The notes under the pieces were generated by a model. That model saw nothing but the letters and a program-made list of their open reading frames with translations, was not told the origin of the DNA and did no database searches. Positions 5,962 through 33,619 of a stretch of DNA of 64,000 nucleotides are shown piece after piece; position 1 is the stretch's first letter; every line of letters starts with the position of its first letter. The DNA is from Macrostomum lignano (taxonomy: Eukaryota): assembly GCA_002269645.1 (NCBI GenBank), contig NIVC01000695.1, forward strand, positions 310,001 to 374,000. The letters are read 5' to 3'. The position numbers and the translations under genes are program-made.

Positions 5962-6121
5962 CTGAAAGTATAAAGTATAGTATAGAAGAATAAGAATATA
6001 GAAGAGATTAAAAACCTTGCCGTACTACTTAGTAGCGTAGTTAGAAGGCAAAATAAAAAACAATAATTTGTTTTTTTCTAAAAAAAGCTTTCAAGGTTCG
6101 CATACATACTTCAGTTATACC

Positions 6122-6745: not shown

Positions 6746-6794
6746 AACACACCCAGTGCTACTAAGTATAAAAATATTGCCACAATTAACTAAC

Positions 6795-7325
6795 CTGATC
6801 GGCTGTGTCAAAATCTTTCCGCATAACGGCAGTCTGGTACTCCAGCACAGACACAAGCAAACTGTAGCTGACAATATTCAGCTCCTTGTCGCCCAGATAC
6901 AACCGGTTCTCCTTGGGTATGTAGCCCAGAACGTACATGACCCGATCTAGATGAGCAACAGTACACAACTCGCCACCGACATAATAGTTCAACCGATTAA
7001 CGGCATTAGTATAGATGAAGCAGTCGCCAACCCACAAACCAGTTCGAACGGATTCCTCTGTCTCGCCAAGGACGTCGAAAGCGTCTTCTACGCCGTCCTC
7101 GGTCAGGCCAACTTTGGTCTGCTTGGCGGTGGCCACGGCTTCGGGTTTGTAGCGCAGTACAAAATAGCTCTCCTCGGTTGCTATGGCAACTAATTCGGAG
7201 GATTCATTCCAGAAAACTAGCTTTGGCGTTATCTCGATACGGCGGACCATGTCGCCGCTCTCCCAGTCGTAGAAGGCGAGGCCGCTGACGGAGCGAACGC
7301 CAAGCATGGCGCCACCGTAGATGCC
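6795..7325 (-). CDS. COPB2: Coatomer subunit beta-prime, exon 4
   Basis: GIYGGAMLGVRSVSGLAFYDWE...GLWVGDCFIYTNAVNRLNYYVGGE...VLEYQTAVMRKDFDTADQ; TTGCAG| at 7326, CAG|GTTAGT at 6794; 531 nt, phase 0 at both ends. Confidence 0.97.
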
Positions 7326-10300
7326 CTGCAAGAGTTGATTGAGTGTTTGGCTAGATTAGCAATCCACTCTATTCTCAATATGATTGGCTAGATTAGCAAT
7401 CCACTCTATTCTAAATATGATTGGCTAGATTAGCAATCCACTCTACTCTCAATATGATTGGCTAGATTAGCAATCCACTCTATTCTCAAGATGATTGGCT
7501 AGATTAGCAATCCACTCTATTCTTAATATGATTGGCTAGATTAGCAATCCACTCTATTCTCAATATGATTGGCTAGATTAGCAATCCACTCTATTCTTTG
7601 GCTAGATTAGCAATCCACTCTATTCTTTGGCTAGATTAGCAATCCACTCTATTCTAAATATGATTGGCTAGATTAGCAATCCACTCTATTCTGAAGATAA
7701 TTGACTAGATTAGCAATCCACTCTATTCTCAAGATGATTGGCTAGATTAGCAATCCACTCTATTCTAAATATGATTGGCTAGATTAGCAATCCACTCTAT
7801 TCTGAAGATGATTGACTAGATTAGCAATCCACTTTATTCTAAATATGATTGGCTAGATTAGCAATCCACTCTATTCTGAAGATGATTGAGTAGATTAGCA
7901 ATCCACTCTATTCTAAATATGATTGGCTAGATTAGCAATCCACTCTATTCTCAATATGATTGGCTAGATTAGCAATCCACTCTATTCTAAATATGATTGG
8001 CTAGATTAGCAATCCACTCTATTCTGAAGATGATTGACTAGATTAGCAATCCACTTTATTCTAAATATGATTGGCTAGATTAGCAATCCACTCTATTCTG
8101 AAGATGATTGACTAGATTAGCAATCCACTCTATTCTAAATATGATTGGCTAGATTAGCAATCCACTCTATTCTCAATATGATTGGCTAGATTAGCAATCC
8201 ACTCTATTCTAAAGATGATTGGCTAGATTAGCAATCCACTCTATTCTCAATATGATTGGCTAGATTAGCAATCCACTCTATTCTAAATATGATTGGCTAG
8301 ATTAGCAATCCACTCTATTCTAAATATGATTGGCTAGATTAGCAATCCACTCTATTCTAAATATGATTGGCTAGATTAGCAATCCACTCTATTCTGAAGA
8401 TGATTGACTAGATTAGCAATCCACTCTATTCTCAAGATGATTGGCTAGATTAGCAATCCACTCTATTCTCAATATGATTGGCTAGATTAGCAATCCACTC
8501 TATTATAAATATGATTGGCTAGATTAGCAATCCACTCTATTCTGAAGATGATTGACTAGATTAGCAATCCACTTTATTCTAAATATGATTGGCTAGATTA
8601 GCAATCCACTCTATTCTGAAGATGATTGACTAGATTAGCAATCCACTTTATTCTAAATATGATTGGCTAGATTAGCAATCCACTCTATTCTGAAGATGAT
8701 TGAGTAGATTAGCAATCCACTCTATTCTAAATATGATTGGCTAGATTAGCAATCCACTCTATTCTCAAGATGATTGACTAGATTAGCAATCCACTCTATT
8801 CTCAATATGATTGGCTAGATTAGCAATCCACTCTATTATAAATATGATTGGCTAGATTAGCAATCCACTCTATTCTGAAGATGATTGACTAGATTAGCAA
8901 TCCACTCTATTCTAAATATGATTGGCTAGATTAGCAATCCACTCTATTCTGAAGATGATTGACTAGATTAGCAATCCACTCTATTCTAAATATGATTGGC
9001 TAGATTAGCAATCCACTCTATTCTAAATATGATTGGCTAGATTAGCAATCCACTCTATTCTGAAGATGATTGACTAGATTAGCAATCCACTCTATTCTAA
9101 ATATGATTGGCTAGATTAGCAATCCACTCTATTCTGAAGATGATTGACTAGATTAGCAATCCACTCTATTCTAAATATGATTGGCTAGATTAGCAATCCA
9201 CTCTATTCTCAATATGATTGGCTAGATTAGCAATCCACTCTATTCTAAAGATGATTGGCTAGATTAGCAATCCACTCTATTCTCAATATGATTGGCTAGA
9301 TTAGCAATCCACTCTATTCAAAATATGATTGGCTAGATTAGCAATCCACTCTATTCTAAATATGATTGGCTAGATTAGCAATCCACTCTATTCTAAATAT
9401 GATTGGCTAGATTAGCAATCCACTCTATTCTGAAGATAATTGACTAGATTAGCAATCCACTCTATTCTCAAGATGATTGGCTAGATTAGCAATCCACTCT
9501 ATTCTCAATATGATTGGCTAGATTAGCAATCCACTATATTATAAATATGATTGGCTAGATTAGCAATCCACTCTATTCTGAAGATGATTGACTAGATTAG
9601 CAATCCACTCTATTCTAAATATGATTGGCTAGATTAGCAATCCACTCTATTCTGAAGATGATTGAGTAGATTAGCAATCCACTCTATTCTAAATATGATT
9701 GGCTAGATTAGCAATCCACTCTATTCTGAAGATGATTGGCTAGATTAGCAATCCACTCTATTCTCAATATGATTGGCTAGATTAGCAATCCACTCTATTC
9801 TAAATATGATTGGCTAGATTAGCAATCCACTCTATTCTGAAGATGATTGACTAGATTAGCAATCCACTCTATTCTGAAGATGATTGACTAGATTAGCAAT
9901 CCACTCTATTCTAAATATGATTGGCTAGATTAGAAATCTACTCTATTCTAAATATGATTGAGTAGATTAGCAATCCACTCTATTCTAAATATGATTGGCT
10001 AGATTAGCAATCCACTCTATTCTCAATATGATTGGCTAGATTAGCAATCCACTCTATTCTGAAGATGATTGGCTAGATTAGCAATCCACTCTATTCTCAA
10101 TATGATTGGCTAGATTAGCAATCCACTCTATTATAAATATGATTGGCTAGATTAGCAATCCACTCTATTCTGAAGATGATTGGCTAGATTAGCAATCCAC
10201 TCTATTCTGAAGATGATTGACTAGATTAGCAATCCACTTTATTCTAAATATGATTGGCTAGATTAGCAATCCACTCTATTCTGAAGATGATTGAGTAGAT

Positions 10301-13300
10301 TAGCAATCCACTCTATTCTAAATATGATTGGCTAGATTAGCAATCCACTCTATTCTCAATATGATTGGCTAGATTAGCAATCCACTCTATTCTAAAGATG
10401 ATTGGCTAGATTAGCAATCCACTCTATTCTCAATATGATTGGCTAGATTAGCAATCCACTCTATTCTAAATATGATTGGCTAGATTAGCAATCCACTCTA
10501 TTCTAAATATGATTGGCTAGATTAGCAATCCACTCTATTCTAAATATGATTGGCTAGATTAGCAATCCACTCTATTCTGAAGATGATTGACTAGATTAGC
10601 AATCCACTCTATTCTCAAGATGATTGGCTAGATTAGCAATCCACTCTATTCTCAATATGATTGGCTAGATTAGCAATCCACTCTATTCTAAATATGATTG
10701 GCTAGATTAGCAATCCACTCTATTCTGAAGATGATTGACTAGATTAGCAATCCACTCTATTCTAAATATGATTGGCTAGATTAGCAATCCACTCTATTCT
10801 GAAGATGATTGACTAGATTAGCAATCCACTTATTCTAAATATGATTGGCTAGATTAGCAATCCACTCTATTCTGAAGATGATTGAGTAGATTAGCAATCC
10901 ACTCTATTCTAAATATGATTGGCTAGATTAGCAATCCACTCTATTCTCAAGATGATTGGCTAGATTAGCAATCCACTCTATTCTCAATATGATTGGCTAG
11001 ATTAGCAATCCACTCTATTCTAAATATGATTGGCTAGATTAGCAATCCACTCTATTCTGAAGATGATTGACTAGATTAGCAATCCACTCTATTCTAAATA
11101 TGATTGGCTAGATTAGCAATCCACTCTATTCTGAAGATGATTGACTAGATTAGCAATCCACTCTATTCTAAATATGATTGGCTAGATTAGCAATCCACTC
11201 TATTCTAAATATTATTGGCTAGATTAGCAATCCACTCTATTCTGAAGATGATTGACTAGATTAGCAATCCACTCTATTCTAAATATGATTGGCTAGATTA
11301 GCAATCCACTCTATTCTGAAGATGATAAACTAGATTAGCAATCCACTCTATTCTAAATATGATTGGCTAGATTAGCAATCCACTCTATTCTCAATATGAT
11401 TGGCTAGATTAGCAATCCACTCTATTCTAAAGATGATTGGCTAGATTAGCAATCCACTCTATTCTCAAGATGATTGGCTAGATTAGCAATCCACTCTATT
11501 CTCAATATGATTGGCTAGATTAGCAATCCACTCTATTCTCAATATGATTGGCTAGATTAGCAATCCACTCTATTCTAAATATGATTGGCTAGATTAGCAA
11601 TCCACTCTATTCTGAAGATGATTGACTAGATTAGCAATCCACTCTATTCTAAATATGATTGGCTAGATTAGCAATCCACTCTATTCTGAAGATGATTGAC
11701 TAGATTAGCAATCCACTCTATTCTAAATATGATTGGCTAGATTAGCAATCCACTCTATTCTGAAGATGATTGAGCTAGATTAGCAATCCACTCTATTCTA
11801 AATATGATTGGCTAGATTAGCAATCCACTCTATTCTCAAGATGATTGGCTAGATTAGCAATCCACTCTATTCTAATATGATTGGCTAGATTAGCAATCCA
11901 CTCTATTCTAAATATGATTGGCTAGATTAGCAATCCACTCTATTCTGAAGATGATTGACTAGATTAGCAATCCACTCTATTCTAAATATGATTGGCTAGA
12001 TTAGCAATCCACTCTATTCTGAAGATGATTGACTAGATTAGCAATCCACTCTATTCTAAATATGATTGGCTAGATTAGCAATCCACTCTATTCTAAATAT
12101 GATTGGCTAGATTAGCAATCCACTCTATTCTGAAGATGATTGACTAGATTAGCAATCCACTCTATTCTAAATATGATTGGCTAGATTAGCAATCCACTCT
12201 ATTCTGAAGATGATTGACTAGATTAGCAATCCACTCTATTCTAAATATGATTGGCTAGATTAGCAATCCACTCTATTCTCAATATGATTGGCTAGATTAG
12301 CAATCCACTCTATTCTAAAGATGATTGGCTAGATTAGCAATCCACTCTATTCTCAAGATGATTGGCTAGATTAGCAATCCACTCTATTCTAATATGATTG
12401 GCTAGATTAGCAATCCACTCTATTCTCAATATGATTGGCTAGATTAGCAATCCACTCTATTCTAAATATGATTGGCTAGATTAGCAATCCACTCTATTCT
12501 AAGATGATTGGCTAGATTAGCAATCCACTCTATTCTAAGATGATTGGCTAGATTAGCAATCCACTCTATTCTAATATGATTGGCTAGATTAGCAATCCAC
12601 TCTATTCTAAATATGATTGGCTAGATTAGCAATCCACTCTATTCTGAAGATGATTGGCTAGATTAGCAATCCACTCTATTCTAAATATGATTGGCTAGAT
12701 TAGCAATCCACTCTATTCTGAAGATGATTGACTAGATTAGCAATCCACTCTATTCTAATATGATTGGCTAGATTAGCAATCCACTCTATTCTAAATGATT
12801 GGCTAGATTAGCAATCCACTCTATTCTAATATGATTGGCTAGATTAGCAATCCACTCTATTCTAAATATGATTGGCTAGATTAGCAATCCACTCTATTCT
12901 AAATATGATTGGCTAGATTAGCAATCCACTCTATTCTGAAGATGATTGGCTAGATTAGCAATCCACTCTATTCTAAATATGATTGGCTAGATTAGCAATC
13001 CACTCTATTCTGAAGATGATTGGCTAGATTAGCAATCCACTCTATTCTGAAGATGATTGGCTAGATTAGCAATCCACTCTATTCTAAATATGATTGGCTA
13101 GATTAGCAATCCACTCTATTCTGAAGATGATTGCTAGATTAGCAATCCACTCTATTCTAAATATGATTGGCTAGATTAGCAATCCACTCTATTCTAAATA
13201 TGATTGGCTAGATTAGCAATCCACTCTATTCTGAAGATGATTGACTAGATTAGCAATCCACTCTATTCTAAATATGATTGGCTAGATTAGCAATCCACTC

Positions 13301-16300
13301 TATTCTGAAGATGATTGACTAGATTAGCAATCCACTCTATTCTAAATATGATTGGCTAGATTAGCAATCCACTCTATTCTAATATGATTGGCTAGATTAG
13401 CAATCCACTCTATTCTAAAGATGATTGGCTAGATTAGCAATCCACTCTATTCTAATATGATTGGCTAGATTAGCAATCCACTCTATTCTAAATATGATTG
13501 GCTAGATTAGCAATCCACTCTATTCTAAATATGATTGGCTAGATTAGCAATCCACTCTATTCTAAATATGATTGGCTAGATTAGCAATCCACTCTATTCT
13601 AAATATGATTGGCTAGATTAGCAATCCACTCTATTCTAAATGATTGGCTAGATTAGCAATCCACTCTATTCTAAATATGATTGGCTAGATTAGCAATCCA
13701 CTCTATTCTAAATATGATTGGCTAGATTAGCAATCCACTCTATTCTAAGATGATTGGCTAGATTAGCAATCCACTCTATTCTAAATATGATTGGCTAGAT
13801 TAGCAATCCACTCTATTCTGAAGATGATTGGCTAGATTAGCAATCCACTCTATTCTAAATATGATTGGCTAGATTAGCAATCCACTCTATTCTAAGATGA
13901 TTGACTAGATTAGCAATCCACTCTATTCTAAATATGATTGGCTAGATTAGCAATCCACTCTATTCTAAATATGATTGGCTAGATTAGCAATCCACTCTAT
14001 TCTAAATATGATTGGCTAGATTAGCAATCCACTCTATTCTAAATATGATTGGCTAGATTAGCAATCCACTCTATTCTAAATATGATTGGCTAGATTAGCA
14101 ATCCACTCTATTCTAAATATGATTGGCTAGATTAGCAATCCACTCTATTCTAAGATGATTGGCTAGATTAGCAATCCACTCTATTCTAAATATGATTGGC
14201 TAGATTAGCAATCCACTCTATTCTAAGATGATTGGCTAGATTAGCAATCCACTCTATTCTAAATATGATTGGCTAGATTAGCAATCCACTCTATTCTAAA
14301 TATGATTGGCTAGATTAGCAATCCACTCTATTCTAAATATGATTGGCTAGATTAGCAATCCACTCTATTCTAAATATGATTGGCTAGATTAGCAATCCAC
14401 TCTATTCTAAATATGATTGGCTAGATTAGCAATCCACTCTATTCTAAATATGATTGGCTAGATTAGCAATCCACTCTATTCTAAATATGATTGGCTAGAT
14501 TAGCAATCCACTCTATTCTAAATATGATTGGCTAGATTAGCAATCCACTCTATTCTAAATATGATTGGCTAGATTAGCAATCCACTCTATTCTAAATGAT
14601 TGGCTAGATTAGCAATCCACTCTATTCTAAATATGATTGGCTAGATTAGCAATCCACTCTATTCTAAATGATTGGCTAGATTAGCAATCCACTCTATTCT
14701 AAATATGATTGGCTAGATTAGCAATCCACTCTATTCTGAAGATGATTGACTAGATTAGCAATCCACTCTATTCTAAATATGATTGGCTAGATTAGCAATC
14801 CACTCTATTCTGAAGATGATTGGCTAGATTAGCAATCCACTCTATTCTAAATATGATTGGCTAGATTAGCAATCCACTCTATTCTAAATGATTGGCTAGA
14901 TTAGCAATCCACTCTATTCTAAATATGATTGGCTAGATTAGCAATCCACTCTATTCTAAATATGATTGGCTAGATTAGCAATCCACTCTATTCTAAGATG
15001 ATTGGCTAGATTAGCAATCCACTCTATTCTAAATATGATTGGCTAGATTAGCAATCCACTCTATTCTAAATATGATTGGCTAGATTAGCAATCCACTCTA
15101 TTCTAAATGATTGGCTAGATTAGCAATCCACTCTATTCTAAATATGATTGGCTAGATTAGCAATCCACTCTATTCTGAAGATGATTGACTAGATTAGCAA
15201 TCCACTCTATTCTAAATATGATTGGCTAGATTAGCAATCCACTCTATTCTAAGATGATTGGCTAGATTAGCAATCCACTCTATTCTAAATATGATTGGCT
15301 AGATTAGCAATCCACTCTATTCTAAATGATTGGCTAGATTAGCAATCCACTCTATTCTAAATATGATTGGCTAGATTAGCAATCCACTCTATTCTAAATA
15401 TGATTGGCTAGATTAGCAATCCACTCTATTCTAAATATGATTGGCTAGATTAGCAATCCACTCTATTCTAAATATGATTGGCTAGATTAGCAATCCACTC
15501 TATTCTAAATATGATTGGCTAGATTAGCAATCCACTCTATTCTAAATATGATTGGCTAGATTAGCAATCCACTCTATTCTAAATATGATTGGCTAGATTA
15601 GCAATCCACTCTATTCTAAATATGATTGGCTAGATTAGCAATCCACTCTATTCTAAATATGATTGGCTAGATTAGCAATCCACTCTATTCTAAGATGATT
15701 GGCTAGATTAGCAATCCACTCTATTCTAAATATGATTGGCTAGATTAGCAATCCACTCTATTCTAAGATGATTGGCTAGATTAGCAATCCACTCTATTCT
15801 AAATATGATTGGCTAGATTAGCAATCCACTCTATTCTAAGATGATTGGCTAGATTAGCAATCCACTCTATTCTAAATATGATTGGCTAGATTAGCAATCC
15901 ACTCTATTCTAAATATGATTGGCTAGATTAGCAATCCACTCTATTCTAAGATGATTGGCTAGATTAGCAATCCACTCTATTCTAAATATGATTGGCTAGA
16001 TTAGCAATCCACTCTATTCTAAATGATTGGCTAGATTAGCAATCCACTCTATTCTAAATATGATTGGCTAGATTAGCAATCCACTCTATTCTGAAGATGA
16101 TTGACTAGATTAGCAATCCACTCTATTCTAAATATGATTGGCTAGATTAGCAATCCACTCTATTCTGAAGATGATTGGCTAGATTAGCAATCCACTCTAT
16201 TCTAAATATGATTGGCTAGATTAGCAATCCACTCTATTCTAAATATGATTGGCTAGATTAGCAATCCACTCTATTCTAAATGATTGGCTAGATTAGCAAT

Positions 16301-19300
16301 CCACTCTATTCTAAATATGATTGGCTAGATTAGCAATCCACTCTATTCTGAAGATGATTGGCTAGATTAGCAATCCACTCTATTCTAAATATGATTGGCT
16401 AGATTAGCAATCCACTCTATTCTAAGATGATTGGCTAGATTAGCAATCCACTCTATTCTAAATATGATTGGCTAGATTAGCAATCCACTCTATTCTAAGA
16501 TGATTGGCTAGATTAGCAATCCACTCTATTCTAAATATGATTGGCTAGATTAGCAATCCACTCTATTCTAAATATGATTGGCTAGATTAGCAATCCACTC
16601 TATTCTAAATGATTGGCTAGATTAGCAATCCACTCTATTCTAAATATGATTGGCTAGATTAGCAATCCACTCTATTCTAAGATGATTGGCTAGATTAGCA
16701 ATCCACTCTATTCTAAATATGATTGGCTAGATTAGCAATCCACTCTATTCTAAATATGATTGGCTAGATTAGCAATCCACTCTATTCTAAATGATTGGCT
16801 AGATTAGCAATCCACTCTATTCTAAATATGATTGGCTAGATTAGCAATCCACTCTATTCTAAATGATTGGCTAGATTAGCAATCCACTCTATTCTAAATA
16901 TGATTGGCTAGATTAGCAATCCACTCTATTCTAATATGATTGGCTAGATTAGCAATCCACTCTATTCTAAATATGATTGGCTAGATTAGCAATCCACTCT
17001 ATTCTAATATGATTGGCTAGATTAGCAATCCACTCTATTCTAAATATGATTGGCTAGATTAGCAATCCACTCTATTCTAAGATGATTGGCTAGATTAGCA
17101 ATCCACTCTATTCTAAATATGATTGGCTAGATTAGCAATCCACTCTATTCTAAATGATTGGCTAGATTAGCAATCCACTCTATTCTAAATATGATTGGCT
17201 AGATTAGCAATCCACTCTATTCTAATATGATTGGCTAGATTAGCAATCCACTCTATTCTAAATATGATTGGCTAGATTAGCAATCCACTCTATTCTAAAT
17301 GATTGGCTAGATTAGCAATCCACTCTATTCTAAATATGATTGGCTAGATTAGCAATCCACTCTATTCTAAATGATTGGCTAGATTAGCAATCCACTCTAT
17401 TCTAAATATGATTGGCTAGATTAGCAATCCACTCTATTCTAAATGATTGGCTAGATTAGCAATCCACTCTATTCTAAATATGATTGGCTAGATTAGCAAT
17501 CCACTCTATTCTAAATATGATTGGCTAGATTAGCAATCCACTCTATTCTAAATATGATTGGCTAGATTAGCAATCCACTCTATTCTAAATGATTGGCTAG
17601 ATTAGCAATCCACTCTATTCTAAATATGATTGGCTAGATTAGCAATCCACTCTATTCTAAATGATTGGCTAGATTAGCAATCCACTCTATTCTAAATGAT
17701 TGGCTAGATTAGCAATCCACTCTATTCTAAATGATTGGCTAGATTAGCAATCCACTCTATTCTAAATGATTGACTAGATTAGCAATCCACTCTATTCTAA
17801 ATATGATTGGCTAGATTAGCAATCCACTCTATTCTAAATATGATTGGCTAGATTAGCAATCCACTCTATTCTAAATATGATTGGCTAGATTAGCAATCCA
17901 CTCTATTCTAAATATGATTGGCTAGATTAGCAATCCACTCTATTCTAAATGATTGGCTAGATTAGCAATCCACTCTATTCTAAATATGATTGGCTAGATT
18001 AGCAATCCACTCTATTCTAAATGATTGGCTAGATTAGCAATCCACTCTATTCTAAATATGATTGGCTAGATTAGCAATCCACTCTATTCTAAATATGATT
18101 GGCTAGATTAGCAATCCACTCTATTCTAAATATGATTGGCTAGATTAGCAATCCACTCTATTCTAAATATGATTGGCTAGATTAGCAATCCACTCTATTC
18201 TAAATATGATTGGCTAGATTAGCAATCCACTCTATTCTAAATATGATTGGCTAGATTAGCAATCCACTCTATTCTAAATATGATTGGCTAGATTAGCAAT
18301 CCACTCTATTCTAAATATTGGCTAGATTAGCAATCCACTCTATTCTAAATGATTGGCTAGATTAGCAATCCACTCTATTCTAAATATGATTGGCTAGATT
18401 AGCAATCCACTCTATTCTAAATATGATTGGCTAGATTAGCAATCCACTCTATTCTGAAGATGATTGGCTAGATTAGCAATCCACTCTATTCTAAATATGA
18501 TTGGCTAGATTAGCAATCCACTCTATTCTAAATGATTGGCTAGATTAGCAATCCACTCTATTCTAAATATGATTGGCTAGATTAGCAATCCACTCTATTC
18601 TAAATGATTGGCTAGATTAGCAATCCACTCTATTCTAATATGATTGGCTAGATTAGCAATCCACTCTATTCTAAATATGATTGGCTAGATTAGCAATCCA
18701 CTCTATTCTAAATATGATTGGCTAGATTAGCAATCCACTCTATTCTAAATGATTGGCTAGATTAGCAATCCACTCTATTCTAAATATGATTGGCTAGATT
18801 AGCAATCCACTCTATTCTAAATATGATTGGCTAGATTAGCAATCCACTCTATTCTAAGATGATTGGCTAGATTAGCAATCCACTCTATTCTAAATATGAT
18901 TGGCTAGATTAGCAATCCACTCTATTCTAAATGATTGGCTAGATTAGCAATCCACTCTATTCTAAATATGATTGGCTAGATTAGCAATCCACTCTATTCT
19001 AAATATGATTGGCTAGATTAGCAATCCACTCTATTCTAAATATGATTGGCTAGATTAGCAATCCACTCTATTCTAAATATGATTGGCTAGATTAGCAATC
19101 CACTCTATTCTAAATATGATTGGCTAGATTAGCAATCCACTCTATTCTAAATATGATTGGCTAGATTAGCAATCCACTCTATTCTAAATATGATTGGCTA
19201 GATTAGCAATCCACTCTATTCTAAATGATTGGCTAGATTAGCAATCCACTCTATTCTAAATGATTGGCTAGATTAGCAATCCACTCTATTCTAAATATGA

Positions 19301-22300
19301 TTGGCTAGATTAGCAATCCACTCTATTCTAAATATGATTGGCTAGATTAGCAATCCACTCTATTCTAAGATGATTGGCTAGATTAGCAATCCACTCTATT
19401 CTAAATATGATTGGCTAGATTAGCAATCCACTCTATTCTGAAGATGATTGGCTAGATTAGCAATCCACTCTATTCTAAATATGATTGGCTAGATTAGCAA
19501 TCCACTCTATTCTGAAGATGATTGGCTAGATTAGCAATCCACTCTATTCTAAATATGATTGGCTAGATTAGCAATCCACTCTATTCTAAATGATTGGCTA
19601 GATTAGCAATCCACTCTATTCTAAATATGATTGGCTAGATTAGCAATCCACTCTATTCTAAATATGATTGGCTAGATTAGCAATCCACTCTATTCTAAAT
19701 GATTGGCTAGATTAGCAATCCACTCTATTCTAAATATGATTGGCTAGATTAGCAATCCACTCTATTCTAAATATGATTGGCTAGATTAGCAATCCACTCT
19801 ATTCTAAGATGATTGGCTAGATTAGCAATCCACTCTATTCTAAATATGATTGGCTAGATTAGCAATCCACTCTATTCTAAGATGATTGGCTAGATTAGCA
19901 ATCCACTCTATTCTAAATATGATTGGCTAGATTAGCAATCCACTCTATTCTAAATGATTGGCTAGATTAGCAATCCACTCTATTCTAAATATGATTGGCT
20001 AGATTAGCAATCCACTCTATTCTAATATGATTGGCTAGATTAGCAATCCACTCTATTCTAAATATGATTGGCTAGATTAGCAATCCACTCTATTCTAAAT
20101 ATGATTGGCTAGATTAGCAATCCACTCTATTCTAAATATGATTGGCTAGATTAGCAATCCACTCTATTCTAAATATGATTGGCTAGATTAGCAATCCACT
20201 CTATTCTAAATATGATTGGCTAGATTAGCAATCCACTCTATTCTAAATATTGGCTAGATTAGCAATCCACTCTATTCTAAATGATTGGCTAGATTAGCAA
20301 TCCACTCTATTCTAATATGATTGGCTAGATTAGCAATCCACTCTATTCTAAATATGATTGGCTAGATTAGCAATCCACTCTATTCTAAGATGATTGGCTA
20401 GATTAGCAATCCACTCTATTCTAAATATGATTGGCTAGATTAGCAATCCACTCTATTCTAAGATGATTGGCTAGATTAGCAATCCACTCTATTCTAAATA
20501 TGATTGGCTAGATTAGCAATCCACTCTATTCTAAGATGATTGGCTAGATTAGCAATCCACTCTATTCTAAATATGATTGGCTAGATTAGCAATCCACTCT
20601 ATTCTAAATATGATTGGCTAGATTAGCAATCCACTCTATTCTAAATGATTGGCTAGATTAGCAATCCACTCTATTCTAAATATGATTGGCTAGATTAGCA
20701 ATCCACTCTATTCTAAATGATTGGCTAGATTAGCAATCCACTCTATTCTAAATATGATTGGCTAGATTAGCAATCCACTCTATTCTAAGATGATTGGCTA
20801 GATTAGCAATCCACTCTATTCTAAATATGATTGGCTAGATTAGCAATCCACTCTATTCTAAGATGATTGGCTAGATTAGCAATCCACTCTATTCTAAATA
20901 TGATTGGCTAGATTAGCAATCCACTCTATTCTAAATATGATTGGCTAGATTAGCAATCCACTCTATTCTAAATGATTGGCTAGATTAGCAATCCACTCTA
21001 TTCTAAATATGATTGGCTAGATTAGCAATCCACTCTATTCTAAATGATTGGCTAGATTAGCAATCCACTCTATTCTAAATATGATTGGCTAGATTAGCAA
21101 TCCACTCTATTCTAAATATGATTGGCTAGATTAGCAATCCACTCTATTCTAAATATGATTGGCTAGATTAGCAATCCACTCTATTCTAAATATGATTGGC
21201 TAGATTAGCAATCCACTCTATTCTAAATGATTGGCTAGATTAGCAATCCACTCTATTCTAAATATGATTGGCTAGATTAGCAATCCACTCTATTCTAAAT
21301 ATGATTGGCTAGATTAGCAATCCACTCTATTCTAAATATGATTGGCTAGATTAGCAATCCACTCTATTCTGAAGATGATTGGCTAGATTAGCAATCCACT
21401 CTATTCTAAATATGATTGGCTAGATTAGCAATCCACTCTATTCTAAGATGATTGGCTAGATTAGCAATCCACTCTATTCTAAATATGATTGGCTAGATTA
21501 GCAATCCACTCTATTCTAAATGATTGGCTAGATTAGCAATCCACTCTATTCTAAATATGATTGGCTAGATTAGCAATCCACTCTATTCTAAATATGATTG
21601 GCTAGATTAGCAATCCACTCTATTCTGAAGATGATTGGCTAGATTAGCAATCCACTCTATTCTAAATATGATTGGCTAGATTAGCAATCCACTCTATTCT
21701 AAATGATTGGCTAGATTAGCAATCCACTCTATTCTAAATATGATTGGCTAGATTAGCAATCCACTCTATTCTAAATATGATTGGCTAGATTAGCAATCCA
21801 CTCTATTCTAAGATGATTGGCTAGATTAGCAATCCACTCTATTCTAAATATGATTGGCTAGATTAGCAATCCACTCTATTCTAAATGATTGGCTAGATTA
21901 GCAATCCACTCTATTCTAAATATGATTGGCTAGATTAGCAATCCACTCTATTCTAAATATGATTGGCTAGATTAGCAATCCACTCTATTCTAAATGATTG
22001 GCTAGATTAGCAATCCACTCTATTCTAAATATGATTGGCTAGATTAGCAATCCACTCTATTCTAAATGATTGGCTAGATTAGCAATCCACTCTATTCTAA
22101 ATATGATTGGCTAGATTAGCAATCCACTCTATTCTAATATGATTGGCTAGATTAGCAATCCACTCTATTCTAAATGATTGGCTAGATTAGCAATCCACTC
22201 TATTCTAAATGATTGGCTAGATTAGCAATCCACTCTATTCTAATATGATTGGCTAGATTAGCAATCCACTCTATTCTAAATATGATTGGCTAGATTAGCA

Positions 22301-25300
22301 ATCCACTCTATTCTGAAGATGATTGGCTAGATTAGCAATCCACTCTATTCTAAATATGATTGGCTAGATTAGCAATCCACTCTATTCTAAGATGATTGGC
22401 TAGATTAGCAATCCACTCTATTCTAAATATGATTGGCTAGATTAGCAATCCACTCTATTCTAAGATGATTGACTAGATTAGCAATCCACTCTATTCTAAA
22501 TATGATTGGCTAGATTAGCAATCCACTCTATTCTAATATGATTGGCTAGATTAGCAATCCACTCTATTCTAAATATGATTGGCTAGATTAGCAATCCACT
22601 CTATTCTAAATATGATTGGCTAGATTAGCAATCCACTCTATTCTAAATGATTGGCTAGATTAGCAATCCACTCTATTCTAAATATGATTGGCTAGATTAG
22701 CAATCCACTCTATTCTAAGATGATTGGCTAGATTAGCAATCCACTCTATTCTAAATATGATTGGCTAGATTAGCAATCCACTCTATTCTAATATGATTGG
22801 CTAGATTAGCAATCCACTCTATTCTAAATATGATTGGCTAGATTAGCAATCCACTCTATTCTAATATGATTGGCTAGATTAGCAATCCACTCTATTCTAA
22901 ATGATTGGCTAGATTAGCAATCCACTCTATTCTAAATGATTGGCTAGATTAGCAATCCACTCTATTCTAATATGATTGGCTAGATTAGCAATCCACTCTA
23001 TTCTAAATATGATTGGCTAGATTAGCAATCCACTCTATTCTGAAGATGATTGGCTAGATTAGCAATCCACTCTATTCTAAATATGATTGGCTAGATTAGC
23101 AATCCACTCTATTCTAAATGATTGGCTAGATTAGCAATCCACTCTATTCTAAATATGATTGGCTAGATTAGCAATCCACTCTATTCTAAATGATTGGCTA
23201 GATTAGCAATCCACTCTATTCTAATATGATTGGCTAGATTAGCAATCCACTCTAATATGATTGGCTAGATTAGCAATCCACTCTATTCTGAAGATGATTG
23301 ACTAGATTAGCAATCCACTCTATTCTAAATATGATTGGCTAGATTAGCAATCCACTCTATTCTGAAGATGATTGGCTAGATTAGCAATCCACTCTATTCT
23401 AAATATGATTGGCTAGATTAGCAATCCACTCTATTCTAAATATGATTGGCTAGATTAGCAATCCACTCTATTCTGAAGATGATTGACTAGATTAGCAATC
23501 CACTCTATTCTAAATATGATTGGCTAGATTAGCAATCCACTCTATTCTGAAGATGATTGGCTAGATTAGCAATCCACTCTATTCTAAATATGATTGGCTA
23601 GATTAGCAATCCACTCTATTCTAAATATGATTGGCTAGATTAGCAATCCACTCTATTCTGAAGATGATTGACTAGATTAGCAATCCACTCTATTCTAAAT
23701 ATGATTGGCTAGATTAGCAATCCACTCTATTCTGAAGATGATTGACTAGATTAGCAATCCACTCTATTCTAAATATGATTGGCTAGATTAGCAATCCACT
23801 CTATTCTAATATGATTGGCTAGATTAGCAATCCACTCTATTCTAAATGATTGGCTAGATTAGCAATCCACTCTATTCTAAGATGATTGGCTAGATTAGCA
23901 ATCCACTCTATTCTAAATATGATTGGCTAGATTAGCAATCCACTCTATTCTAAATATGATTGGCTAGATTAGCAATCCACTCTATTCTGAAGATGATTGA
24001 CTAGATTAGCAATCCACTCTATTCTAAATATGATTGGCTAGATTAGCAATCCACTCTATTCTGAAGATGATTGACTAGATTAGCAATCCACTCTATTCTA
24101 AATATGATTGGCTAGATTAGCAATCCACTCTATTCTGAAGATGATTGGCTAGATTAGCAATCCACTCTATTCTAAATATGATTGGCTAGATTAGCAATCC
24201 ACTCTATTCTAATATGATTGGCTAGATTAGCAATCCACTCTATTCTAATATGATTGGCTAGATTAGCAATCCACTCTATTCTAAATATGATTGGCTAGAT
24301 TAGCAATCCACTCTATTCTGAAGATGATTGACTAGATTAGCAATCCACTCTATTCTAAATATGATTGGCTAGATTAGCAATCCACTCTATTCTGAAGATG
24401 ATTGGCTAGATTAGCAATCCACTCTATTCTAAATATGATTGGCTAGATTAGCAATCCACTCTATTCTAATATGATTGGCTAGATTAGCAATCCACTCTAT
24501 TCTAAGATGATTGGCTAGATTAGCAATCCACTCTATTCTAAATGATTGGCTAGATTAGCAATCCACTCTATTCTAATATGATTGGCTAGATTAGCAATCC
24601 ACTCTATTCTAAATATGATTGGCTAGATTAGCAATCCACTCTATTCTGAAGATGATTGACTAGATTAGCAATCCACTCTATTCTAAATATGATTGGCTAG
24701 ATTAGCAATCCACTCTATTCTGAAGATGATTGACTAGATTAGCAATCCACTCTATTCTAAATATGATTGGCTAGATTAGCAATCCACTCTATTCTGAAGA
24801 TGATTGGCTAGATTAGCAATCCACTCTATTCTAAATATGATTGGCTAGATTAGCAATCCACTCTATTCTAATATGATTGGCTAGATTAGCAATCCACTCT
24901 ATTCTGAATATGATTGGCTAGATTAGCAATCCACTCTATTCTAAATATGATTGGCTAGATTAGCAATCCACTCTATTCTGAAGATGATTGACTAGATTAG
25001 CAATCCACTCTATTCTAAATATGATTGGCTAGATTAGCAATCCACTCTATTCTGATGATTGGCTAGATTAGCAATCCACTCTATTCTAAATATGATTGGC
25101 TAGATTAGCAATCCACTCTATTCTAAGATGATTGGCTAGATTAGCAATCCACTCTATTCTAATATGATTGGCTAGATTAGCAATCCACTCTATTCTAATA
25201 TGATTGGCTAGATTAGCAATCCACTCTATTCTAAATATGATTGGCTAGATTAGCAATCCACTCTATTCTAAATATGATTGGCTAGATTAGCAATCCACTC

Positions 25301-28300
25301 TATTCTGAAGATGATTGACTAGATTAGCAATCCACTCTATTCTAAATATGATTGGCTAGATTAGCAATCCACTCTATTCTAAATATGATTGGCTAGATTA
25401 GCAATCCACTCTATTCTGAAGATGATTGACTAGATTAGCAATCCACTCTATTCTAAATATGATTGGCTAGATTAGCAATCCACTCTATTCTGAAGATGAT
25501 TGGCTAGATTAGCAATCCACTCTATTCTAAATATGATTGGCTAGATTAGCAATCCACTCTATTCTAAATATGATTGGCTAGATTAGCAATCCACTCTATT
25601 CTGAAGATGATTGACTAGATTAGCAATCCACTCTATTCTAAATATGATTGGCTAGATTAGCAATCCACTCTATTCTGAAGATGATTGTAGATTAGCAATC
25701 CACTCTATTCTAAATATGATTGGCTAGATTAGCAATCCACTCTATTCTCAATATGATTGGCTAGATTAGCAATCCACTCTATTCTAAAATGATTGGCTAG
25801 ATTAGCAATCCACTCTATTCTGAAGATGATTGACTAGATTAGCAATCCACTCTATTCTAAATATGATTGGCTAGATTAGCAATCCACTCTATTCTGAAGA
25901 TGATTGACTAGATTAGCAATCCACTCTATTCTAAATATGATTGGCTAGATTAGCAATCCACTCTATTCTAAATATGATTGGCTAGATTAGCAATCCACTC
26001 TATTCTGAAGATGATTGACTAGATTAGCAATCCACTCTATTCTAAATATGATTGGCTAGATTAGCAATCCACTCTATTCTGAAGATGATTGACTAGATTA
26101 GCAATCCACTCTATTCTAAATATGATTGGCTAGATTAGCAATCCACTCTATTCTCAATATGATTGGCTAGATTAGCAATCCACTCTATTCTAAAGATGAT
26201 TGGCTAGATTAGCAATCCACTCTATTCTCAATATGATTGGCTAGATTAGCAATCCACTCTATTCTGAAGATGATTGAGTAGATTAGCAATCCACTCTATT
26301 CTAAATATGATTGGCTAGATTAGCAATCCACTCTATTCTAAATATGATTGGCTAGATTAGCAATCCACTCTATTCTGAAGATAATTGACTAGATTAGCAA
26401 TCCACTCTATTCTGAAGATGATTGACTAGATTAGCAATCCACTCTATTCTCAATATGATTGGCTAGATTAGCAATCCACTCTATTCTGAAGATGATTGAC
26501 TAGATTAGCAATCCACTCTATTCTAAATATGATTGACTAGATTAGCAATCCACTTTATTCTAAATATGATTGGCTAGATTAGCAATCCACTCTATTCTGA
26601 AGATGATTGGCTAGATTAGCAATCCACTCTATTCTAAATATGATTGGCTAGATTAGCAATCCACTCTATTCTAAATATGATTGGCTAGATTAGCAATCCA
26701 CTCTATTCTCAATATGATTGGCTAGATTAGCAATCCACTCTATTATAAATATGATTGGCTAGATTAGCAATCCACTCTATTCTCAATATGATTGGCTAGA
26801 TTAGCAATCCACTCTATTCTCAAGATGATTGGCTAGATTAGCAATCCACTCTATTCTGAAGATGATTGACTAGATTAGCAATCCACTCTATTCTAAATAT
26901 GATTGGCTAGATTAGCAATCCACTCTATTCTAAATATGATTGGCTAGATTAGCAATCCACTCTATTCTGAAGATGATTGACTAGATTAGCAATCCACTTA
27001 TTCTAAATATGATTGGCTAGATTAGCAATCCACTCTATTCTGAAGATGATTGAGTAGATTAGCAATCCACTCTATTCTAAATATGATTGGCTAGATTAGC
27101 AATCCACTCTATTCTAAATATGATTGGCTAGATTAGCAATCCACTCTATTCTGAAGATGATTGACTAGATTAGCAATCCACTTATTCTAAATATGATTGG
27201 CTAGATTAGCAATCCACTCTATTCTGAAGATGATTGACTAGATTAGCAATCCACTCTATTCTAAATATGATTGGCTAGATTAGCAATCCACTCTATTCTC
27301 AATATGATTGGCTAGATTAGCAATCCACTCTATTCTCAAGATGATTGGCTAGATTAGCAATCCACTCTATTCTCAAGATGATTGGCTAGATTAGCAATCC
27401 ACTCTATTCTCAATATGATTGGCTAGATTAGCAATCCACTCTATTCTAAATATGATTGGCTAGATTAGCAATCCACTCTATTCTCAAGATGATTGGCTAG
27501 ATTAGCAATCCACTCTATTCTCAATATGATTGGCTAGATTAGCAATCCACTCTATTCTAAATATGATTGGCTAGATTAGCAATCCACTCTATTCTAAATA
27601 TGATTGGCTAGATTAGCAATCCACTCTATTCTGAAGATAATTGACTAGATTAGCAATCCACTCTATTCTCAAGATGATTGGCTAGATTAGCAATCCACTC
27701 TATTCTCAATATGATTGGCTAGATTAGCAATCCACTCTATTATAAATATGATTGGCTAGATTAGCAATCCACTCTATTCTGAAGATGATTGACTAGATTA
27801 GCAATCCACTTATTCTAAATATGATTGGCTAGATTAGCAATCCACTCTATTCTGAAGATGATTGAGTAGATTAGCAATCCACTCTATTCTAAATATGATT
27901 GGCTAGATTAGCAATCCACTCTATTCTCAAGATGATTGGCTAGATTAGCAATCCACTCTATTCTCAATATGATTGGCTAGATTAGCAATCCACTCTATTA
28001 TAAATATGATTGGCTAGATTAGCAATCCACTCTATTCTGAAGATGATTGAGTAGATTAGCAATCCACTCTATTCTAAATATGATTGGCTAGATTAGCAAT
28101 CCACTCTATTCTCAATATGATTGGCTAGATTAGCAATCCACTCTATTCTCAATATGATTGGCTAGATTAGCAATCCACTCTATTCTAAATATGATTGGCT
28201 AGATTAGCAATCCACTCTATTCTGAAGATGATTGACTAGATTAGCAATCCACTTTATTCTAAATATGATTGGCTAGATTAGCAATCCACTCTATTCTGAA

Positions 28301-29051
28301 GATGATTGACTAGATTAGCAATCCACTCTATTCTAAATATGATTGGCTAGATTAGCAATCCACTCTATTCTCAAGATGATTGGCTAGATTAGCAATCCAC
28401 TCTATTCTCAATATGATTGGCTAGATTAGCAATCCACTCTATTCTAAATATGATTGGCTAGATTAGCAATCCACTCTATTCTAAATATGATTGGCTAGAT
28501 TAGCAATCCACTCTATTCTAAATATGATTGGCTAGATTAGCAATCCACTCTATTCTGAAGATGATTGACTAGATTAGCAATCCACTCTATTCTAAATATG
28601 ATTGGCTAGATTAGCAATCCACTCTATTCTAAATATGATTGGCTAGATTAGCAATCCACTCTATTCTGAAGATGATTGACTAGATTAGCAATCCACTTTA
28701 TTCTAAATATGATTGGCTAGATTAGCAATCCACTCTATTCTGAAGATGATTGAGTAGATTAGCAATCCACTCTATTCTAAATATGATTGGCTAGATTAGC
28801 AATCCACTCTATTCTAAATATGATTGGCTAGATTAGCAATCCACTCTATTCTGAAGATGATTGACTAGATTAGCAATCCACTTTATTCTAAATATGATTG
28901 GCTAGATTAGCAATCCACTCTATTCTGAAGATGATTAAGTAGATTAGCAATCCACTCTATTCTAAATATGATTGGCTAGATTAGCAATCCACTCTATTCT
29001 CAATATGATTGGCTAGATTAGCAATCCACTTTATTCTAAATATGATTGGCT

Positions 29052-29317
29052 CATACATGCGCAACTGCTGGCCGACCTGGCCGATCTGGCCACCGTAAAT
29101 TGTGGTGGACCAGGGGTAAGTCGCAAAAATGCCTAGCCTATAGAATACAGACATAGTACTAATTAGATGACGAGGCATTTAGCCCTTATAAGACAGTCAT
29201 AGTTACTCCTGCCGTTTACCCAAAATTGCATTAGGGTTTCTTTTACAGGTAAGTCGCATTTTTGGTCAAAAAGTAAGTTGCATGGCCAGTGTAAATCAGG
29301 GGGGTTGCGCATGTATG
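29052..29317. mobile_element. 266-bp MITE inserted in the satellite, copy 1
   Basis: Perfect 14-bp TIRs CATACATGCGCAAC / GTTGCGCATGTATG; 9-bp duplication TGATTGGCT on both sides (29043-29051, 29318-29326). Confidence 0.9.
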
Positions 29318-30436
29318 TGATTGGCTAGATTAGCAATCCACTATATTCTCAATATGATTGGCTAGATTAGCAATCCACTTTATTCTAAATATGATTGGCT
29401 AGATTAGCAATCCACTCTATTCTGAAGATGATTGACTAGATTAGCAATCCACTTTATTCTAAATATGATTGGCTAGATTAGCAATCCACTCTATTCTGAA
29501 GATGATTGACTAGATTAGCAATCCACTCTATTCTGAAGATGATTGACTAGATTAGCAATCCACTTTATTCTAAATATGATTGGCTAGATTAGCAATCCAC
29601 TCTATTCTGAAGATGATTGACTAGATTAGCAATCCACTCTATTCTCAATATGATTGGCTAGATTAGCAATCCACTCTATTCTCAATATGATTAGCTAGAT
29701 TAGCAATCCACTTTATTCCCAATATGATTGACTAGATTAGCAATCCACTCTATTCTCAAGATGATTGGCTAGATTAGCAATCCACTCTATTCTCAATATG
29801 ATTGGCTAGATTAGCAATCCACTCTATTCTAAATATGATTGGCTAGATTAGCAATCCACTCTATTCTAAATATGATTGGCTAGATTAGCAATCCACTCTA
29901 TTCTAAATATGATTGGCTAGATTAGCAATCCACTCTATTCTGAAGATGATTGACTAGATTAGCAATCCACTCTATTCTAAATATGATTGGCTAGATTAGC
30001 AATCCACTCTATTCTAAATATGATTGGCTAGATTAGCAATCCACTCTATTCTGAAGATGATTGACTAGATTAGCAATCCACTTTATTCTAAATATGATTG
30101 GCTAGATTAGCAATCCACTCTATTCTGAAGATGATTGAGTAGATTAGCAATCCACTCTATTCTAAATATGATTGGCTAGATTAGCAATCCACTCTATTCT
30201 AAATATGATTGGCTAGATTAGCAATCCACTCTATTCTGAAGATGATTGACTAGATTAGCAATCCACTTTATTCTAAATATGATTGGCTAGATTAGCAATC
30301 CACTCTATTCTGAAGATGATTAAGTAGATTAGCAATCCACTCTATTCTAAATATGATTGGCTAGATTAGCAATCCACTCTATTCTCAATATGATTGGCTA
30401 GATTAGCAATCCACTTTATTCTAAATATGATTGGCT

Positions 30437-30702
30437 CATACATGCGCAACTGCTGGCCGACCTGGCCGATCTGGCCACCGTAAATTGTGGTGGACCAGGG
30501 GTAAGTCGCAAAAATGCCTAGCCTATAGAATACAGACATAGTACTAATTAGATGACGAGGCATTTAGCCCTTATAAGACAGTCATAGTTACTCCTGCCGT
30601 TTACCCAAAATTGCATTAGGGTTTCTTTTACAGGTAAGTCGCATTTTTGGTCAAAAAGTAAGTTGCATGGCCAGTGTAAATCAGGGGGGTTGCGCATGTA
30701 TG
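30437..30702. mobile_element. 266-bp MITE, copy 2 (part of a 1385-bp tandem duplication)
   Basis: Apparently identical to copy 1, with the same TSD and same flanking satellite variants at offset 1385. Confidence 0.9.
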
Positions 30703-31670
30703 TGATTGGCTAGATTAGCAATCCACTATATTCTCAATATGATTGGCTAGATTAGCAATCCACTTTATTCTAAATATGATTGGCTAGATTAGCAATCCAC
30801 TCTATTCTGAAGATGATTGACTAGATTAGCAATCCACTTTATTCTAAATATGATTGGCTAGATTAGCAATCCACTCTATTCTGAAGATGATTGACTAGAT
30901 TAGCAATCCACTCTATTCTGAAGATGATTGACTAGATTAGCAATCCACTTTATTCTAAATATGATTGGCTAGATTAGCAATCCACTCTATTCTGAAGATG
31001 ATTGACTAGATTAGCAATCCACTCTATTCTCAATATGATTGGCTAGATTAGCAATCCACTCTATTCTCAATATGATTAGCTAGATTAGCAATCCACTTTA
31101 TTCCCAATATGATTGACTAGATTAGCAATCCACTCTATTCTCAATATGATTGGCTAGATTAGCAATCCACTCTATTCTCAATATGATTGGCTAGATTAGC
31201 AATCCACTTTATTCCCAATATGATTGGCTAGATTAGCAATCCACTCTATTCTCAATATGATTGGCTAGATTAGCAATCCACTCTATTCTCAATATGATTG
31301 GCTAGATTAGCAATCCACTCTATTCTCAAGATGATTGGCTAGATTAGCAATCCACTCTATTCTCAATATGATTGGCTAGATTAGCAATCCACTCTATTCT
31401 CAATATGATTGGCTAGATTAGCAATCCACTCTATTCTCAATATGATTGGCTAGATTAGCAATCCACTCTATTCTCAAGATGATTGGCTAGATTAGCAATC
31501 CACTCTATTCTCAATATGATTGGCTAGATTAGCAATCCACTCTATTCTCAAGATGATTGGCTAGATTAGCAATCCACTCTATTCTCAAGATGATTGGCTA
31601 GATTAGCAATCCACTCTATTCCCAATATGATTGGCTAGACTAGTAATTCCCTCTAGTTTCAATTATTTAC

Positions 31671-32081
31671 CTCGCATCCGAACTCCGGTTTGAAGGCGCG
31701 AACCTCTTTAAAATTCTTGAACACTTTCACCGTGGTGGTGCCCTCTCGAATAGCATAGGTTGACGCATCGGTGGTGCACCAGACAAACTCCTGTGCCTGA
31801 CCAAAGGCTTTGTTTCGCAGAGCCATGGCCGTGTAGATGATGAACTCGCCGTCTCCACTGACAGCTACAAAGCGACCGTTGGGGCTGTGGGCGATGGTCT
31901 GCGGGTAGATCTCACACGAGCCCATGTCCTTGATGGTCAGCGGCAGTCGGTCGCCGTCTTGAAATTCTTCGTCAGCAGACAAGGTGCGCAAATTGGCCTG
32001 CTGGACTTCGGCGTGACGAGCCCACAGGATTTTGCCCGAGGCGTCCATGGAGATGGCGGGCTCTTCGCGACCCAACTTCAC
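31671..32081 (-). CDS. COPB2: Coatomer subunit beta-prime, exon 3
   Basis: VKLGREEPAISMDASGKILWARHAEVQQANL...KDMGSCEIYPQTIAHSPNGRFVAVSGDGEFIIYTAMALRNKAFG; TTTAG| at 32082, GAG|GTAAAT at 31670; 411 nt. Confidence 0.97.
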
Positions 32082-33460: not shown

Positions 33461-33619
33461 CTAGAAATTTATAAATCATTTAGATACTCTTGAAAGCTAC
33501 TGTTAGTAGGAGGATGGAGTGTCAATTAATAACTGGTGAATCTAAATAATAAATTGGATAAAATTCACTTTGGCCAACTTAAGTTATTCACTTAAAACTC
33601 CTCTTAAAACTTGCGAAAG

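Follow-up and report, generated by a model that had tools for sequence, protein, structure and literature searches.

Intronic tandem repeats that have grown in one allele of a broadly expressed gene are familiar from FXN (GAA) and C9orf72 (G4C2), where structure-forming repeats of 3–6 nt have known silencing or toxic effects. Arrays of longer units are exemplified by human CACNA1C, whose intron 3 carries a variable number tandem repeat (VNTR), TRACT, with a 30-bp unit, a span of 3 to more than 30 kb, and haplotypes that are either short, at about 6 kb, or long, at about 24 kb (PMC13131567). The TRACT haplotype classes are enriched for different unit variants, and expansion was inferred via perfect tracts that were later interrupted by mutations (PMC13131567). 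In Drosophila, the introns of the Y-linked fertility genes kl-3 and kl-5 consist mostly of tandem repeats that are transcribed through for mRNA production (PMC6508621), and such gigantic introns reach hundreds of kb to Mb, or more than 1000 times a typical intron (PMC11207136). Here, we describe a 64,000-nt stretch of the Macrostomum lignano genome (contig NIVC01000695.1 of assembly GCA_002269645.1, positions 310,001 to 374,000 of the forward strand; hereafter the window, numbered from its first letter), in which 24,345 nt, made almost wholly of a 37-bp tandem repeat, separate exons 3 and 4 of a COPB2 gene.

M. lignano has three subgenomes (S, L1, and L2), which diverge by 1.9–2.4% in single-nucleotide polymorphisms (SNPs) and by 32–36% if long insertions are included (PMC10733133). 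In the Mlig_3_7 assembly of this species, 15% of the sequence is tandem or simple repeat, and the mean intron is 1.1–1.4 kb long (PMC5730564). The interval described here is probably intron 3 of one of three subgenome copies of COPB2 in this neopolyploid (g1, g2, and g3, the last being the copy in the window), in which a hypervariable intronic minisatellite has expanded.

The closest known case is CACNA1C TRACT, and not the Drosophila Y-loop introns to which an initial annotation of the window had likened it. Both TRACT and the COPB2 repeat are built of units of tens of bp, lie wholly in an intron of a conserved gene, and show an extreme length gap (6 versus 24 kb in human; 1.4–1.9 versus 24 kb in COPB2); in both, long and short versions differ in unit variants, and homogeneous runs are found in COPB2 g3 too. 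The COPB2 length classes, however, sit on three neopolyploid subgenome copies and not on the alleles of a diploid population. The COPB2 array also fills its intron to within 15–21 nt of the splice sites and supplies a branch-point-like motif, whereas TRACT takes up only a minor portion of its very large intron; and while an effect on expression is known for TRACT, one for the COPB2 array is conceivable.

The Y-loop introns resemble COPB2 intron 3 in being almost wholly tandem repeats, but the likeness fails on scale, as 24,345 nt is about 20 times the mean intron of the species, against hundreds of kb to Mb in Drosophila. The repeats of the Y loops are simple satellites shared with heterochromatin, and they are Y-linked and expressed only in spermatocytes with dedicated factors; the COPB2 array, in contrast, comprises 24 kb of an apparently locus-specific 37-bp unit on a gene-bearing 473-kb contig, within a ubiquitous trafficking gene that has two sister copies with short introns. 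With FXN and C9orf72, the locus shares the question of whether repeat length impairs a broadly expressed gene, but the 37-nt unit has no predicted special structure or comparable strand asymmetry. The general richness of M. lignano in tandem repeats, evident in the 15% of the assembly cited above and in the 20% of the window outside intron 3 that is tandem array, forms the genomic setting, from which the 24.3-kb array stands apart by its length of about 20 mean introns.

The COPB2 gene and the borders of intron 3

The gene lies on the minus strand and corresponds to BOX15_Mlig008776g3, copy g3 (locus L002), of M. lignano line DV1 in the Mlig_3_7 assembly (GCA_002269645.1). The window matches this locus of the 473,521-bp contig NIVC01000695.1 as its reverse complement, with an offset that stays constant. 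Its spliced model joins six exons across GT-AG introns into a 2,808-nt coding sequence (CDS), which encodes a 935-aa protein without interruption:

34179..34355, minus strand, COPB2 exon 1 (ATG at 34355; assembled gene model)
32750..33460, minus strand, COPB2 exon 2 (assembled gene model)
31671..32081, minus strand, COPB2 exon 3 (ends in FKPEFGCE; mouse COPB2 alignment)
7326..31670, minus strand, intron 3 (24,345 nt, GT-AG, phase 0; gapless junction relative to mouse COPB2)
6795..7325, minus strand, COPB2 exon 4 (starts with GIYGG)
5750..5961, minus strand, COPB2 exon 5 (assembled gene model)
3948..4713, minus strand, COPB2 exon 6 (stop codon included)

The initial annotation had recognized the gene as COPB2 (beta'-COP) and had proposed that its frame joins cleanly across the interval in phase 0, and both statements are confirmed. 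Residues 1–932 align end to end with residues 1–903 of mouse beta'-COP (PDB 5a1u_D; E = 0), so the similarity covers the full length of the protein (two WD40 propellers and an alpha-solenoid) with an intact open reading frame (ORF), and animal COPB2 proteins are 66–75% identical to the g3 protein. The CDS through exon 3 comprises 1,299 nt, or 433 codons, which places intron 3 in phase 0, and the FKPEFGCE/GIYGG junction passes through the mouse alignment without a gap. A concealed exon within the array was considered, and this gapless junction rules it out. No stretch without a stop codon in the intron exceeds 65 aa on the sense strand or 42 aa on the antisense strand.

The top protein match is BOX15_Mlig008776g2 (100% identity), and g1, g3, and three proteins of the ML2 annotation fall into the same cluster at 90% identity. 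The product of g3 matches GenBank entry PAA78313.1 at 100%, save for one additional leading residue in the GenBank entry. The gene is already annotated in GenBank with its 24-kb intron 3, and the intron itself is not new to databases. That annotation drew on RNA-seq reads with up to 1000 multi-mappings and on de novo transcripts at an identity of at least 80% (PMC5730564); because it was built with multi-mapping RNA data, the GenBank model of g3 is not evidence specific to this copy.

The array lies fully inside the intron and leaves splice sites and reading frame intact, as in an expanded intronic VNTR. The signals at its two borders are as follows:

31665..31670, minus strand, 5' splice site GTAAAT, within the first, degenerate repeat unit
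7355..7359, minus strand, putative branch-point-like CTAAT (ATTAG on the plus strand), from the last repeat unit
7326..7346, minus strand, non-repeat 3' tail of intron 3, AACACTCAATCAACTCTTGCAG, which holds the 3' splice site

On the donor side, exon 3 ends in GGATGCGAG and is followed by GTAAAT at 31671/31670, and 4 nt past the donor GT begins a degenerate unit that, by hand comparison, shares about 70% identity with the consensus. On the acceptor side, CTCTTGCAG precedes the start of exon 4 (GGCATC) at 7326/7325, and the A of the CTAAT in the last unit, which would act as the branch point, is 31 nt upstream of this true 3' splice site. In the calls of Tandem Repeats Finder (TRF), the array stops 15 nt short of the donor and 21 nt short of the acceptor, so that an earlier estimate of about 20 nt for the acceptor stands, whereas that of about 30 nt for the donor was too large. 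The donor region differs among the copies: g1 has 38 additional nt at the 5' end of intron 3 (L003 15410–15447) and the donor GTGAGC, while g2 and g3 have in common, relative to g1, a 38-nt deletion that spans exactly from one GT to the next GT and leaves the donor GTAAAT.

Anatomy of the 37-bp array

Intron 3 of g3 is a single tandem array over 99.9% of its length, composed of head-to-tail units of 37 bp (intronic VNTRs have units of roughly 10–100 bp) with the sense-strand consensus TCATATTTAGAATAGAGTGGATTGCTAATCTAGCCAA. The GC content falls to 0.33–0.35 over the array, in which the following parts are distinguished:

7347..31655, minus strand, 37-bp tandem array (TRF: 661.7 copies, 93% matches, score 41235)
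13387..23593, minus strand, homogeneous core (roughly monomers 200–480; type A units and their 35/36-nt derivatives E, F, and G)
28347..31144, minus strand, internal tandem duplication (1,385-bp period; perfect identity over 1,413 nt; one insert per copy)
30437..30702, minus strand, insert of 266 bp resembling a miniature inverted-repeat transposable element (MITE), copy 1 (14-bp terminal inverted repeats; 9-bp target-site duplication AGCCAATCA)
29052..29317, minus strand, 266-bp MITE-like insert, copy 2 (identical to copy 1)

An intron nearly filled by some 650 units of a satellite-like repeat had been noted at first inspection, and the 661.7 copies counted by TRF agree with this. The accompanying description of the array as almost pure is accurate in terms of coverage, but it passes over the two 266-bp inserts, which are not repeat and account for 2.2% of the intron. 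The further term satellite DNA, which implies a genome-wide heterochromatic repeat, is weakened: within 136 kb of genome (the 64-kb window and the other loci), the 37-bp unit was found only in intron 3 of the three COPB2 copies. On this extent of sequence, the unit appears to behave as a minisatellite that is specific to the locus and hypervariable in length.

Cutting the sense strand at a conserved anchor gave 643 units of 43 distinct types, a few of which dominate. The units at the 5' edge (THHC...) match those of g2, and both flanks abound in the types that also compose the g1 array (D, B, I, and C). The central 10–12 kb, by contrast with the flanks, are made of types A, E, F, and G, which are essentially private to g3 (none occur in g2 and nearly none in g1). 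Units differ from the consensus by 1.3–1.6 substitutions at the edges, a figure that drops to 0.1–0.3 in the core (0.1–0.65 over 13387–23593), and there are runs of up to nine identical units. Long and short arrays thus differ in the composition of their unit variants, and the homogeneous tracts mark expansion, as described for expanded intronic VNTRs. Varied old edges around a uniform young centre may be explained by unequal exchange or replication slippage, because these processes yield such a pattern. We found no consistent higher-order periodicity in the array, only weak 2- and 5-unit patterns.

Both 266-bp inserts sit in the 5' flank of the g3 array, and none is present in the g1 or g2 array. 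Each is a short non-coding element bounded by 14-bp perfect terminal inverted repeats (CATACATGCGCAAC) and, together with its target-site duplication, resembles a MITE in these respects. Within the window and the three loci, the two copies in the duplicated block are the only ones, and the insert is present twice because the 1,385-bp block has been duplicated.

Three COPB2 copies compared

The assembly contains three collinear COPB2 loci: g3 (L002, in the window), g2 (L001, on contig NIVC01001630.1), and g1 (L003). Among the 2,808 coding sites, 30 differ, with 10 private to each copy (about 0.7% apart), and the proteins differ by one to two residues. Intron lengths diverge far more widely:

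g3 introns 1 to 5: 718, 668, 24,345, 833, and 1,036 nt
g2 introns 1 to 5: 13,728, 612, 1,874, 966, and 822 nt
g1 introns 1 to 5: 2,953, 1,151, 1,468, 1,509, and 1,325 nt

At the matching position in intron 3, the 37-bp array has 661.7 units in g3, 49.9 in g2, and 37.7 in g1. It had been proposed that about 650 units are probably transcribed with every COPB2 mRNA; given three near-identical copies, of which only g3 has 24 kb and g2 and g1 have introns of 1.9 and 1.5 kb, this does not follow. Nor is the array a singular case, since all five introns of g3 are filled to 75–99.9% by private arrays (75%, 83%, 99.9%, 76%, and 81% for introns 1–5, with short unique flanks at the splice sites). The units of the five introns are unrelated to one another, and the arrays occupy matching positions in all three copies:

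33616..34155, minus strand, intron 1 array of a 23-bp unit (23.6 units in g3, 594 in g2, 120 in g1)
32150..32706, minus strand, intron 2 array of a 31-bp unit (18.5 units in g3, 16.5 in g2, 34.5 in g1)
6119..6748, minus strand, intron 4 array of a 20-bp unit (30.4 units in g3, 36.8 in g2, 64.3 in g1)
4833..5667, minus strand, intron 5 arrays of an about 30-bp unit (TRF)

Intron 1 of g2 is itself a giant, with a 23-bp array of 594 units and 13.5 kb (L001 10207–23750), and it represents another large expansion in this gene family, independent of the one in g3. The spread in copy number among the three copies is about 17-fold for the intron 3 array and about 25-fold for the intron 1 array; such large differences at one locus are typical of expanded intronic VNTRs, and they are compared here among subgenome copies and not among population alleles. 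Because all copies carry arrays, intron 3 of g3 represents the extreme length state of a hypervariable minisatellite and not a specialty of COPB2. The short array of g2 was also considered as a collapsed version of the g3 array, and this was rejected since the two arrays follow different unit orders beyond the first four units and also at their 3' ends.

The three loci are related in a mosaic fashion. On the upstream side of the intron 2 array, g1 and g2 almost coincide and g3 stands apart (for example, one 2.7-kb block contains 144 g3-private sites, versus 2 and 14 for the other copies), whereas downstream, beginning with exon 3, it is g1 that stands apart from a nearly identical pair of g2 and g3. 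The switch falls across the intron 2 array (32150–32706), and it reflects either recombination or gene conversion between subgenomes at this array, or a chimeric contig.

Proposed origin of the expanded intron

The anatomy of the array and its position in the three copies are consistent with the following course. A 37-bp minisatellite would have been present in intron 3 before the three copies diverged, and in g3 it would have grown to about 660 units (24 kb) by repeated unequal exchange or replication slippage. In this growth, the type A unit and its 35/36-nt derivatives would have been amplified in the middle of the array, while the older, varied units were kept at the edges. A 266-bp MITE-like element would have entered the g3 array and later been doubled within a 1.4-kb block. 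The splice signals are preserved, with the GTAAAT donor in the first degenerate unit and, in the last unit, the CTAAT 31 nt before the CTCTTGCAG acceptor, which is unique. The expansion may owe its tolerance to its place in an intron and to the two sister copies, from which the same protein is encoded.

The coding sequence of g3 carries the record of its past constraint. The ORF is intact, and the changes private to g3, which occur on both sides of intron 3 (CDS positions 138, 183, 636, 675, and 705 before it and 1587, 1884, 1890, 2657, and 2784 after it), comprise nine synonymous and one non-synonymous substitution. By a binomial estimate, in which about 72% of random changes are expected to be non-synonymous, neutral evolution would yield so low a number with a chance of about 8e-5, and the excess of synonymous changes therefore points to purifying selection on the g3 lineage for most of its history. 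The expansion could postdate most of the g3-private coding changes.

The array is also poor in signals that could compete with the donor. Its sense strand contains no GTRAGT, its only GTAAAT is the true donor, and nearly all GTs in the repeat units stand in weak contexts (AGA/GTGGAT or CTA/GTCAAT); with no strong internal donor, pseudo-exons are therefore not easily defined. The RNA of the repeat folds no better than shuffled sequences (z = -0.41), and no match to Rfam was found in the window at gathering thresholds. From these features, the g3 intron would most likely be transcribed and removed as an ordinary, unusually long intron.

Alternative explanations

Several observations weigh against an expanded but otherwise ordinary intron. 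The sense strand of the array has 653 CTAAT motifs, one per unit, and it also presents about 400 decoy acceptors (307 of the form CATATTTAG/A and 97 of the form CATCTTCAG/A), each with a CTAAT 20 nt upstream and with a pyrimidine content of 0.60–0.65, compared with 0.55 at the true site. A further 22 sense-strand AATAAA motifs occur in the array units, and efficient splicing is therefore not guaranteed. The GenBank model of g3 could, given the multi-mapping of reads, derive from transcripts of g1 or g2. The locus specificity of the unit is drawn from only about 136 kb of the genome. Concerning the assembly itself, Mlig_3_7 was made with Canu from PacBio continuous long reads (CLR), and 36% of its length is in inter-subgenome chimeric scaffolds (PMC10733133); the perfect 1,385-bp duplication could be a product of the assembler, and 30–45% of the core units are 35/36-nt variants, some of which may be indel errors of the consensus.

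The splicing-related points would be accommodated if the array were real but harmful. In that case, decoy sites, AATAAA motifs, or chromatin changes induced by the repeat would reduce productive g3 mRNA or prevent it altogether; g3 would be an early victim of homeologue loss following genome duplication, and the function would rest with g1 and g2. Splicing to a decoy would join the GGATGCGAG of exon 3 to AATAGAGTGG and lead to a stop after five codons (AAT AGA GTG GAT TGC TAA), and the pyrimidine content of the decoys equals or exceeds that of the true site. Two redundant COPB2 copies exist, the about 24-kb alleles of human CACNA1C TRACT are associated with lower expression (PMC13131567), and a 3.5-kb insertion private to g3 lies about 0.75 kb upstream of its ATG. 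We nevertheless consider such an impairment, though a real alternative, unlikely, given the intact ORF, the nine-to-one ratio of synonymous to non-synonymous private changes, and the lack of a strong internal donor with which a pseudo-exon could be defined; moreover, the shorter array of g1 has the same decoy motifs, including eight CTTCAG units. The first two of these points are tempered by age, as the expansion may be too recent for any trace of decay. A protein search with residues from about 225 to 550 returned no M. lignano transcript fragments, its sole return being the ML2 model of 436 aa, and the gene identifier Mlig008776 is unmentioned in the searchable papers and supplements. No ML2 contig record was retrieved for the 502-aa and 436-aa ML2 proteins.

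That the 24-kb length or the join was made by Canu, with a true intron much shorter or a haplotype switch inside the array, seems more improbable still. Beyond the assembly-related points given above, only 64% of bases were found to be error-free by REAPR (PMC5730564), the relationships of the three contigs are mosaic with a switch at the intron 2 array, and the ML2 annotation broke the gene exactly at intron 3, into models of 436 aa and 502 aa. In these models (P0158, P0123, and P0125), the 436-aa protein reads past the donor (...FGCEVNN and a stop) and the 502-aa proteins begin with GIYGG; because ML2 was built from the same PacBio data (PMC5730564), this split lends no independent support either way. 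The array, however, lies deep in a 473-kb contig, and, leaving aside the single 1,385-bp duplication, it repeats no string of more than 12 units, so that the aperiodic pattern of units can anchor overlaps and be assembled from multi-kb reads. Because its edges are unlike those of either sister array, the g3 array is not g1 and g2 strung together, and the clustering of the deletion variants at a single hotspot of the unit speaks against random consensus error.

The flanks of the array likewise argue for continuity. Both are nearer to g2 than to g1, with g3-private SNPs on either side: the exon 3 block has no differences between g3 and g2 and 14 g1-private sites, and the exon 4 block has three differences between g3 and g2 and five g1-private sites. 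A haplotype switch at the intron 3 array was looked for without any sign of one, the visible switch being at the intron 2 array. We regard the feature as real and correctly delimited, and the exact array length as provisional.

A system like the Y loops, in which a true satellite needs or provides a special function in transcription (for instance, a dedicated RNA-binding programme, a nuclear body, a chromatin boundary, or centromere-like chromatin), is highly improbable, for beyond the superficial resemblance of an intron that is almost all tandem repeats, the intron is about 20 and not at least 1000 times the mean length, the sister copies do the same job with 38–50 units, the repeat RNA has no structural signal or Rfam match, and copy number varies freely at all arrays of the locus, including intron 1 of g2, which fits neutral length drift.

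Array-filled introns and homeologue divergence

Taken alone, COPB2 intron 3 is an expanded intronic minisatellite, extreme in length but otherwise ordinary for a genome whose wealth of tandem repeats was already established. The arrangement seen in all five COPB2 introns leads us to a tentative generalization, which we hold to be possible and not probable: introns of M. lignano may commonly consist of short splice-site flanks around a private minisatellite, and runaway changes in length, of which COPB2 provides two (24 kb in intron 3 of g3 and 13.5 kb in intron 1 of g2), might be a main source of the 32–36% divergence between subgenomes by long insertions. The arrays might also serve as switch points for recombination or conversion, given that the affinities of the three copies change at the intron 2 array, and their length might drive the early divergence or silencing of homeologue expression that follows genome duplication. 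No description of introns filled by private minisatellites was found in the searchable literature.

The locus provides a natural experiment, as one animal carries three copies of an essential gene that encode nearly the same protein and whose array lengths are about 17-fold and 25-fold apart. The 30 coding SNPs distinguish the transcripts of the three copies, and they allow one to ask what an intronic array of 1–24 kb costs in transcription, splice-site choice, and premature termination, and whether such expansions contribute to the silencing of homeologues after whole-genome duplication. A practical caution also follows from the ML2 split, namely that array-filled introns are break points for M. 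lignano assemblies and gene models.

Other features of the window

Upstream of COPB2, an AT-rich insertion of about 3.5 kb (~35109–38608; GC about 0.31–0.34) begins about 0.75 kb from the start codon and is found in g3 only. No terminal repeats and no long ORF were found in it, and for want of the former a transposon was rejected as its identity.

A palindrome at 54051–57146 and 58845–61935 has inverted arms of about 3.1 kb that are 99–100% complementary and are separated by a 1.7-kb spacer. The arms contain 251/252-bp tandem units, and each carries an identical 106-aa ORF. The structure could be a real inverted duplication or an assembly artefact of missed PacBio adapters.

Downstream of COPB2, on the minus strand, lies a putative netrin or laminin-N-terminal gene (~1162–2913), which has a start resembling a signal peptide and a laminin-EGF-like motif (CFCNGHAARC). 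This gene is also interrupted or flanked by private arrays, with a 38-bp unit at 1978–2285 and a 27-bp unit at 805–1180.

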